Made by a program: the position numbers and the translations under genes
Source: Macrostomum lignano
Taxonomy: Eukaryota
NCBI GenBank assembly: GCA_002269645.1
Contig: NIVC01002146.1
Span: 62,001-126,000 of the forward strand
Reading direction: 5' to 3'
DNA: 64,000 nucleotides
Part shown: in pieces, positions 18,501-21,500 of the stretch
How positions within the stretch are numbered: the first letter of the stretch is position 1
Layout of the letters: every line of letters begins with the position of its first letter
Notes under the pieces: model-generated
Told to the model about the DNA's origin: nothing
Database searches by the model: none
What the model saw: only the letters and a program-made list of their open reading frames with translations

Positions 18501-21500
18501 ATCCCGACGCCGTCGGCTCCTTCAACAGATGACACCAAGTGACTATGGACACCCTGATGCGAATTTCTCGAGTTTCACCGATCAAGCCTCGACAGTAGGC
18601 AAGCCTCAACTTCTGAAAACCCTCAGCTAGTCTCTCGAGCATTCCGTCATCACACCGACACCGTCGGCACCTTCAACAGGTGGCACCAGGGGAGTAAGGA
18701 CACCTGAGCGTGATTTTTCATCATGCTCTTAACATTTCTGAAGCTCTCAGATTTTTAAGCACGAACATTGCTATAGTTAAGCTTGAACTCATGTTGCTGT
18801 ATATTTATAATATTATTACACATACTTTTATACATACGAGCTACATACATATTTTATTCGAAAAGCTGTTTAGTTTATTCAACTATAATATTGAACCCAA
18901 TTTTTATGCAGAAAGGGTTATGCTTTTAAAAAATGAAAAAAACCGATTGAATTTACTGGCACGCAAATGAAACTAAGGATCAAGTAAAGGTAGCCACTAG
19001 TATTATAATAAATAAACGAAAATTAGCGCAAAAGCATGATAGCTACTACTGTACATTCGCAAGAAATCCTAGAACAATGACAAAGTTTTTCATTATCCTC
19101 AAATATCCTTCAATTTTCTGATGACATGCACAACAAATTCGTGGCCGGAAATCTTTCGTGCTCCTTCCGGCTGGAATAGAAATGAAAATAAGACAATATT
19201 TTTTTCGTAAGCACTTCGTGTACAGTACATCTATACTTACAGGCGGTGCATCAACAGCCCTGCCACCAGTGACTTTTCGAAGATAGGTGGTAACTTCAGC
19301 TGGCCATGTGTACCTGCCAGGTCCTATTGGTGATCGGCGCATGTATCTAGCCCAAATTCGGTAGGCCTCATATCGAGCTTCTTTTCTTTTGGTGTCCTTG
19401 TAGACGGAACAAAATGCAATAAACTTTTTTATGTCATTCGCTGTTGCGCCATTCCGCCGCAGAAAATCTTTAACATTCTCAATGTCGGAAGACATGTCAC
19501 GCAACTCTGCAGCGCTGAAGCTGTTTACTTTAGAAACCTATAATTCGCGGAACCTCGTTTGTGATATAAATGTACCAGTGTTGGATGGCAAGTGGTGTGT
19601 AAACAACCTTCCCACATATATAGCCTTAGGAACTGGGGCTAGACAGCGGGCAGAATATGGGGTAGGTAAAGGCTGTCTGTCGGGCAGCAGCCAATCACGG
19701 TCTGCCGCCAGCGAGGGGAAGGGTCTCTAGGGTCACAAGGGGGAAGGCAGAGCGCCAGCACGCAAGGGTGGGTCTATAAAGACTCTAAACCCCAAAACCC
19801 GGCCTCACTTACTGGCCCAAAACAGACAAGAGTGAAATTTTTCAAAGCTTTAGATATCAGACAAGCAGTTTTGCGCCAACTGCAATGGCGAGCTATAGCG
19901 GCAGATGCCCCAAAGGTTCTGACCCAACTGACGAATCAAGATCGACCAGTACCGATTCAAGTGGTTCGGAAGTAAGTGAAGCTGACGCTGACGAGTTTCT
20001 GTCCGATGAGGAGCCGCCCGAAGTATCGTTAGCGCCGTCAAAACTACAAGTAATTCATGAGATCAGGCCCCTACCAGATCATGAATTTAGCTATAGCACT
20101 CAACATCCGCACCCAAGGCGATGGCCAAGCGACTCTGTACTGCGTTTGGAACCGCAGATCAATCCAAACTTTTCTTTCGACTCGCCAACGGAATGCGTCC
20201 TATTTTTTTTGCCCAGAGATGCTGTTGAAGAAATTGTCAGAGCGACAAATGAGACTGGCCATCGCAGACTTGGCAGTGACTTCGAAGACTGTGATGTTGT
20301 TGAAATGGAAGGCTTCATTGGAGCACTACTTTATTTAGGAGCCCACAACATGCGTAACGCAAGTGTACAGCAAATTTGGTGTGTCGACCCCTGTCATCCG
20401 ATTCACGCTTTTTTGGTAACAGGCTTCTCGAGAAACAGATCTTCGCAATTATGGAGTTGTCTCTCGTTTGAATGTCGCGCGAGCCGGATTGCAAGGGCTG
20501 CCAGAGATCCGATCTACGGCATTCGAGCTCTGTATAGCACTTTTCAAGATCGCCTCGCAATGCCCGTCCTGCCTGGAGCCTACATTTGTGTCGATGAACA
20601 ACTCATTCGATACTATGGCAATGACTGCAGCTTTGCTGTCTTCATGAAGGACAAGCCAGCAAGAAACGGCCTGAAGTTTTTCATGGCAACGACTGCTCGA
20701 AATCCGATCGAAGAAAGCAGTGACACACTACATTATGTGTACAAGTCAGAATTGTACACCGCAGACAACAACCTGCTGATGAAAGCGGAGAGCGGTGGCG
20801 TCGGCAAATACTGGAGTGGCGAGCAAGTACTGCTTCGTCTATCCGACAACTTTGAAGGCTTTTGGGTAAACATTACCGCTGATCGTTTTTTTACTAGCCC
20901 AAGGGTGGCAGCAGCGCTCTACGATAAAAAAATAACACTTCTGGGAACCGTAAAGCGCGATCGCAAGGGGCTGCCACCTCAGTTTAAGGACAAAAAGAGA
21001 CCAAGTCAGCCAGAGTTCCTCTATGACGGGCCTCTTACAGTCGTGCGTGCTTCAAGCAAGCGGAGGACTGTAATTCTGTTATCCACTAATCACCATGACA
21101 GCCGACGTGTGCCTCCAAAGAACAAACCAGAGCTGACCCAGCACTACAACGCAACGAAGGCTGGCACCGACACGATCAACAGAATGGTTACCACTATGAA
21201 CTGCCATCGCATATCGCGTTGTCTTGAAAAGACCATTTTTACTGGACACATGCTCAATGTGGTGTGGATCAACGGACACACGGTTTACCGTCTTTCAGGT
21301 CACACGGGCCTAACTCGCAAAGAGTTTCTCCTTCAAGCTGCTTCCGGTTTGCTTCAATCACAGATTGAACGCCGTGCGAATGACCTAACCGGCATGTCAA
21401 GTCATCTACGTAGTCTTTTCAACACGGTGCTGAAAATCCAACCAAATTATCAGCTATCTGAATGCGCTACTGCCGATCGGCCAACAGGAGAGCGAGGGCG

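Follow-up and report, generated by a model that had tools for sequence, protein, structure and literature searches.

A predicted accessory gene of a conserved protein family in a piggyBac transposon of Macrostomum lignano

The genome of the flatworm Macrostomum lignano harbours, on contig NIVC01002146.1 (assembly GCA_002269645.1), a piggyBac transposon in which a small accessory gene of two predicted exons lies head-to-head with the transposase gene. The element is located in a stretch of 64,000 nucleotides (positions 62,001 to 126,000 of the contig, forward strand), hereafter called the window, and all coordinates given below are those of this stretch. It is 5157 bp long and bordered by TTAA on both sides. 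The transposase gene (19885..21651, plus strand) is intact and encodes 588 amino acids with a Cys-rich C-terminal tail, ending in a TAA stop codon at 21649-21651, and its product matches the Pfam family PF13843 (DDE_Tnp_1_7) with E=1.1e-46 over profile positions 2-349 of 349. The two genes diverge from an intergenic region of 389 nt (19496..19884), which contains a TATA-like sequence, TATATA, on the minus strand starting at 19622.

The accessory gene, as read and translated from the sequence of positions 18700-19900, is an open reading frame (ORF) of 108 codons on the minus strand that encodes a 12.5-kDa protein and is split into two exons (19495..19241 and 19170..19099). Exon 1 (19241..19495; 255 nt, 85 codons) starts with an ATG at 19495 and holds the stretch RYEAYR...YLR, which corresponds to residues 41-73 of the product. 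The predicted intron (19171..19240, 70 nt) separates codons 85 and 86 (phase 0) and is of the canonical GT-AG type, with GTAAGT at its donor end, a polypyrimidine tract and TTCCAG at its acceptor end (GTAAGT...TTGTCTTATTTTCATTTCTATTCCAG, 19240-19171). Exon 2 (19099..19170, 72 nt) contributes 23 codons and the TGA stop codon at 19101-19099, and 3' of it stand two AATAAA polyadenylation signals (18879-18874 and 18858-18853; together 18853..18879). Without splicing the frame reads on to give a product of 149 residues. The original prediction, made from the letters of the window, had proposed the spliced frame and its RYEAYR-x7 motif and had seen no N-terminal Cys cluster, and each of these statements agrees with our reading: the exons, the GT-AG intron and the motif at residues 41-73 are in place, and the sole Cys conserved among the homologues described below is C29. 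Exact-sequence look-ups returned no record, whether for the transposase or for the accessory protein in its spliced or unspliced form.

A conserved family and its linkage to piggyBac transposases

An exhaustive HMMER/phmmer scan of 1.84 billion representative proteins identified 21 homologues of the accessory protein (E 1.6e-36 to 7e-4) with lengths of 60-164 residues, and a profile search added 10 further family proteins (E 1e-42 to 1e-25). A word-indexed protein search with the 108-residue protein gave nothing, so that the family surfaced only in the exhaustive search. Most homologues align to residues ~6-107 of the query, that is, over the exon junction at residues 85/86. The family consensus reads ..YLxxGGATxxEIxxFxxWC...RYExYRLWARLLRxRRTP......FxFxxxLKxYLRxxTGGxxVDxxPPxxA..I....FVxYVVRxLDDxF, and the window protein shares homology with it over the full length, including the GGAT..EI..F..WC, RYxxYRLWA and LKxYLR blocks and the FVxYVVRxLDD tail. 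The peptide encoded by exon 2 agrees with the C-terminal tail of the family; the homologue P0034, for example, ends in ...AAIQVTGEEFVKYVVKILKDI. Several of the homologues come from TARA Oceans metagenomes.

The closest relative, P0033, is encoded on three Logan contigs (L003-L005) and is 68.5% identical to the window protein when spliced in the same way, P0033 itself being an ORF call that extends into the intron. In these contigs, tblastn reveals exon 1, a 90-nt intron of the form GTAAGC...TTACAG that contains two in-frame stop codons, and an exon 2 encoding PDGARNVSGEEFVNYVIKRMKDI; the intron interrupts the same codon position as that of the window gene, and exon 2 is conserved. P0034 and the marine members are intronless, and P0042 and P0048 end at the intron position, which hints that they share the same intron. 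Between the window gene and this closest relative, the proportion of non-synonymous differences (pN=0.185) is far below that of synonymous differences (pS=0.80, with synonymous sites saturated), while the introns and the 200-nt flanks are 0.54-0.605 identical, the level of shuffled sequence (null 0.585). The coding sequence thus bears the mark of purifying selection, the lack of which among copies the original prediction had listed as one of the signs against its proposal. As homologues align over the splice junction, the intron position is shared and pN is much lower than pS, we judge that the accessory ORF is a genuine two-exon gene carried by the piggyBac element, as far as comparative sequence evidence can tell.

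No Pfam domain is found in any of the 22 family members, nor anything relevant in the spliced or the unspliced window product. Sequence searches of the PDB, with the single protein and with a profile, gave noise only (E>=0.2), a search of JGI metagenome contigs with a tighter family alignment brought up no relatives, and literature searches found no description of a family of this kind of ~110 residues. By its sequence, the accessory protein is a member of a conserved family of ~110 residues that is undescribed as judged by Pfam, the PDB and the literature searched.

Structure prediction gives a coherent picture. The AlphaFold2 model of the window protein, built on an alignment of 22 sequences, reaches a predicted local distance difference test (pLDDT) score of 89.1 and a predicted template modelling (pTM) score of 0.80, with five helices (residues 2-14, 19-30, 38-53, 66-76 and 94-100) and a bridge of two strands (62-63/90-91). 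The segment encoded by exon 2 is well packed in this model, with a mean pLDDT of 96 for residues 91-100 and of 77 and 81 in the adjoining blocks. An independent model of the family member P0054, built on 10 sequences, shows the same order of secondary-structure elements with pLDDT 89.1 and pTM 0.81. When the two models were compared by Foldseek with 350,542 PDB chains, no match was better than E=7, and in BFVD no match had an E-value below 4.6. The accessory protein is thus predicted to be compact and mostly helical and to have no relative of known structure.

The proximity of accessory gene and transposase gene is not confined to the window, as the original prediction had anticipated in proposing a TBLASTN search for head-to-head pairs in other genomes. 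Contigs L001 and L003 overlap with 100% identity over 1049 nt and together represent one related element, in which the accessory gene stands head-to-head with a transposase (P0001, 71% identical to that of the window) across a spacer of 1160 nt. At a further locus, seen on Mb-scale ENA contigs of three samples (L006-L008), the accessory gene for P0053 is divergent from fragmented ORFs matching PF13843 at a distance of 343 nt. The open P0053 frame at this locus (8700-10300), next to the fragmented transposase, is without the first helix; the copy may be in decay, or its accessory gene may be heading towards domestication. On contigs L002 and L012, the divergent upstream ORFs have Ser/Asp-rich N-termini like those of piggyBac transposases, with the contigs ending before this can be confirmed. 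Counting the window, the L001/L003 element, L006-L008 and one more contig (L009, discussed below), the other contigs being too short to judge, three or more independent loci show the family linked to piggyBac, usually with divergent transcription.

Inverted repeats of the element and its surroundings

The element is framed by long inverted repeats. Its left TTAA target-site duplication (17999..18002) is followed by the left arm (18003..19175), which starts with CAGTAGAACTACCAAG-G12-AAATT-C9 and contains 151-nt repeats, the polyadenylation signals of the accessory gene, exon 2 and the last 5 nt of the intron. The right arm (21655..23159) starts 3 nt past the transposase stop codon, contains a duplicate of exon 2 together with 151-nt repeats and runs up to the right TTAA, which was located by sequence reading at 23160..23163. 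The termini are CAGTAG...CTACTG. On the left, TTAA is directly followed by CAGTAGAACTACCAAG, G12, AAATT and C9, and on the right, read as the reverse complement, by CAGTAG, 28 extra nt, AACTACCAAG and G9. These 28 extra nt between CAGTAG and AACTACCAAG make the two ends asymmetric. Unequal spacers are a feature of canonical piggyBac ends, and the asymmetric ends of this element recall them. At each end, ~16 nt from the tip, there is a palindrome of a G-run, AAATT and a C-run (18019-18045 and 23088-23116), which on the left is the G12-AAATT-C9 already mentioned.

The element shares with canonical piggyBac (IFP2 and relatives) the DDE_Tnp_1_7 domain, the Cys-rich C-terminus of the transposase, the TTAA duplication and the asymmetric ends with an extra spacer. 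It differs in that canonical piggyBac has a single gene and short terminal repeats, whereas here arms of ~1.2-1.5 kb with 151-nt tandem repeats are combined with a second, divergent gene that has its last exon in the repeat.

Within the inverted repeat, the inner 424 nt of the two arms are 100% identical (18752-19175 against 21655-22078) and an outer stretch of 697 nt is 97% identical. Between these blocks lie the 151-nt tandem repeats, with 2.2 copies in the left arm (18367-18704) and 4.3 copies in the right arm (22125-22767). The sub-terminal repeats are only 79-88% alike and unequal in copy number between the arms, and they are candidate arrays for protein binding. With its TTAA duplications, its intact transposase and the complete identity of the inner repeat, the element is apparently intact and autonomous.

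The inner edge of the left repeat (19175) lies 5 nt inside the accessory intron, and consequently the splice acceptor, exon 2, the 3' untranslated region and both AATAAA signals (18879-18853) consist of repeat sequence. On the other side, a silent duplicate of exon 2 is found at 21660-21731, 8 nt past the transposase stop codon, and AATAAA signals for the transposase at 21951 and 21972 (21951-21977) mirror those of the accessory gene, so that each arm would provide a terminator for the gene running into it. In the related L001/L003 element, the repeat begins only ~300 nt beyond each stop codon. For this reason it seems that the repeat spread inward over exon 2 in this lineage specifically, when sequence of the left arm was copied to the right arm.

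Immediately to the left of the element, an 84-nt satellite (16991-18004) with 12.1 copies of 99% identity stops precisely at the left TTAA, which lies inside its last unit. From 23164 onward the satellite does not continue, and a diverged, inverted piece of the 84-nt unit occurs at 23794-23849. This layout suggests either a rearrangement after insertion or an insertion at the edge of the array.

Elsewhere in the window, an intronless α-tubulin ORF (31144-32508, plus strand, 454 residues) matches PF00091 with E=3e-58 and falls into a 90% identity cluster that holds a Macrostomum lignano UniRef entry. An ORF on the minus strand (11191-12270), located in a repetitive stretch, matches the Pfam entry PF25296, "Decapeptide repeat region", with E=1.4e-12. 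Many other ORFs of at least 150 codons overlap in several frames, and those looked at lie in tandem repeats (e.g. 14479-16420). Rfam has no match in the window.

A possible role in transposition

The interpretation that we hold with good confidence is that the accessory ORF is a functional, piggyBac-borne gene of a conserved family, probably encoding a cofactor or regulator of the transposase and not demonstrably related to KolX or the P2X7 ballast. This probable role is deduced from the linkage of the two genes, with the second ORFs of Harbinger and Kolobok transposons serving as the analogy. In this model, the 389-nt spacer would presumably act as a bidirectional promoter for both genes, and the two transcripts would end at the polyadenylation signals within their respective inverted-repeat arms. 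The accessory protein would then act together with the transposase during transposition, and its binding partner would be either the transposase itself or the DNA of the element ends or of the sub-terminal 151-nt repeats. Conserved polar residues (R41, R53, K69, R73 and D82) among positions that otherwise belong to the hydrophobic core could form a surface for such binding. The description as a basic DNA-binding protein was dropped as a family trait, the isoelectric points of the members ranging from 4.8 to 10.1.

A likeness of function can be drawn to the Myb/SANT-like second ORF of PIF/Harbinger, which is also a small non-catalytic protein encoded beside a cut-and-paste transposase and a possible partner of it. 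The likeness goes no further than this functional analogy, as PIF/Harbinger belongs to another superfamily, the 22 family members contain no Myb/SANT or other known DNA-binding domain according to Pfam, and the proteins are related in neither sequence nor fold.

Several observations speak against such a function or qualify it. The gene model comes from sequence alone, and neither the spliced window protein nor the spliced protein of its relative is present in a collection of 15 billion proteins; the alignments behind the predicted structures are shallow (22 and 10 sequences), and the function is read from linkage. The net charge is not conserved within the family, and this spread of isoelectric points (4.8-10.1) weakens a simple DNA-binding model. 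At L006-L008 the transposase is fragmented though the accessory ORF persists, and on L009 the accessory gene (P0063) follows a piggyBac transposase ORF in the same orientation, ~300 nt downstream. Around the transposases of three further loci (L013-L015), ~28% identical to that of the window, up to 9.7 kb of sequence holds no accessory homologue, which indicates that the gene is not universally required and marks a subset of piggyBac elements. Contig L009, with its same-strand gene order at 2029-3920, also carries an Exo_endo_phos ORF (endonuclease/reverse-transcriptase-type) and a DUF1280 ORF.

Some of these observations can also be accommodated by the main competing explanation, according to which the protein is a passenger or a host-directed factor, for example one that counters host silencing or benefits the host, and has no direct role in transposition. 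Its absence from the related elements L013-L015 fits this explanation, the intact accessory ORF beside a fragmented transposase at L006-L008 favours it slightly, and the protein has no recognisable DNA-binding or catalytic domain. Against this, the linkage to piggyBac recurs down to ~32% identity of the accessory proteins with the divergent arrangement conserved, and no family member has been found in a clearly non-transposon context, most contigs being too short to tell. A pure passenger therefore appears rather unlikely to us, and a partner of the transposase is the explanation that we prefer.

Relation to KolX and implications for piggyBac

The RYEAYR motif had led to a more specific proposal, namely that the accessory protein is a P2X7-ballast- or KolX-like protein captured from a Kolobok transposon. 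Its background is borne out in part: KolX of the Kol0 Kolobok elements is ballast-like, and Kolobok makes TTAA duplications (Kojima & Bao 2022, PMC9587614). A few piggyBac families moreover carry KolX-like proteins without most of the seven Cys residues (PMC9587614) which in the ballast are conserved and form a dinuclear zinc site (PMC9587614; PMC9859053), and this provides a precedent for such a capture. The core of the ballast is RxxAYRx[FY]xxW-x2-GxLGxGxRxV[IV]P[SA]CxVxxIRxx[FY]PxxxGxYxG[FY] (Fig. S6, PMC9587614), and the window protein has the KolX spacing, its R-Y-x-A-Y-R being followed by R (+15), P (+19) and L-R (+26/+27). The proposal was right on this point, as the window copy keeps R41, A44, Y45, R46, R61, P65, L72 and R73, but the spacing is a peculiarity of this copy: in the family, the loop from RYxxYR to LKxYLR varies by up to 6 residues, neither GPG (the GxG of the motif) nor the Pro of TWP (P65) is conserved, and the GxYxGF end of the ballast core is absent from the family alignment. 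The dinuclear zinc site with its seven Cys residues has no counterpart either, C29 being the only family-conserved Cys, an absence that is not decisive by itself given that most of these residues are missing from the published piggyBac KolX-like proteins as well.

Profile comparisons lead to the same result. The Pfam profile P2RX7_C (PF20478) detects the human P2X7 C-terminus with E=2.5e-58 and the second protein of the transposon piggyBac-2_GrCh with E=9.9e-6, whereas 0 of the 22 family members match it at E<=10. Against an alignment taken from Fig. S6 of PMC9587614 and extended by two piggyBac KolX-like proteins, hhalign paired only KEARYEAYR with SRLRHCAYR, over 9 columns with a probability of 0.26% (P=0.23). 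In a calibrated local hhalign comparison with 14 P2X7, Nanor and KolX sequences, piggyBac-2_GrCh_2p scored P=6e-13 (97.9%) and piggyBac-14_PI_2p P=0.0068, while the window protein alone gave P=0.073 over exactly the 38 columns proposed earlier and a family profile of 32 sequences gave P=0.21 over 10 columns. True remote homology usually strengthens when family information is added. Here it weakens the match, from 0.073 for the single sequence to 0.21-0.23 for the family, and this counts against remote homology.

What remains in favour of the ballast is that the best, non-significant alignments of both hhalign and HMMER always fall on the R-x-x-A-Y-R helix, and that the HMMER P-values with filters off are mildly skewed, all being below 0.26; with all filters off, the score of the window protein is 0.5 bits (P=0.053), the R..AYR stretch alone being aligned. 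The helix-strand-helix-strand order of residues 38-91 is also not incompatible with that in the last part of the ballast. Neither of the two predicted models matches a P2X7 chain (in which the ballast comprises residues 393-595) in Foldseek at E<=10, a comparison in which similarity confined to a sub-structure of ~55 residues might go undetected, and the exhaustive phmmer search yielded no ballast-like proteins. The comparison by profile and by predicted structure that had been suggested as a check shows no significant similarity; the identification with KolX, which we regard as very improbable, is not supported, and neither is the capture from Kolobok. What the family and KolX or the ballast have in common is that KolX, too, is the accessory protein of a TTAA-targeting transposon, and that the window copy has a local R-[YH]-x-A-Y-R with [IVL]-R 27 residues later; they differ in the lack of significant similarity of sequence, profile or structure, in the missing Cys set, in a spacing that is not family-wide and in size (108 residues against ~120-200 for the ballast).

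The KolX-like products of the second ORFs in piggyBac-2_GrCh and piggyBac-14_PI (Kojima & Bao 2022, Mob DNA 13:24, Data S6) deserve a comparison of their own, because they, too, stem from small second ORFs of piggyBac elements, most of the seven ballast Cys residues are missing from them and a short R/K-x-x-A-Y-R/K-like helix is followed by a basic stretch. GrCh_2p is nevertheless recognised by both P2RX7_C and the KolX profile, in contrast to the P=0.07-0.2 of the present family, in which the GxLGKGxR-x3-P-x-C motif and the terminal GxYxGF are both missing and the N-terminal half is a different one with a two-helix unit, "FLxxGGATxxEIxxFxxWC". A KolX-like protein in piggyBac has thus already been published, and the family described here is a different one, with no demonstrable relationship to it. 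The remaining explanation, that both the ORF and the GT-AG pair arose by chance in non-coding transposon DNA, might draw on a gene model known from sequence alone and on the duplication of exon 2, as part of the repeat, downstream of the transposase, but is effectively refuted by at least 21 homologues, the conserved intron position, a pN far below pS and a confidently predicted fold that includes exon 2.

What is new is an undescribed family of piggyBac-associated proteins, whereas DNA transposons with two genes are a known theme. In a bolder form, which we offer as a tentative possibility, the elements would represent a two-component piggyBac lineage of flatworms and marine plankton metagenomes with an obligatory partner of ~110 residues, whose fold is not in the PDB and which evolves in concert with the transposase and is required for transposition or tunes it, and in which the inverted repeats have been extended to supply the last exon of the partner and both terminators. 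A tempting connection with how the P2X7 ballast arose is unsupported and is corrected here. PiggyBac, a major tool of genome engineering that also serves for transgenesis in Macrostomum, is regarded as a transposon with a single gene. If the two-component view is true, the piggyBac superfamily would have members built like Harbinger and Kolobok, a protein fold and family without current annotation would be added, and the accessory protein would be a candidate modulator of piggyBac activity that is directly testable.

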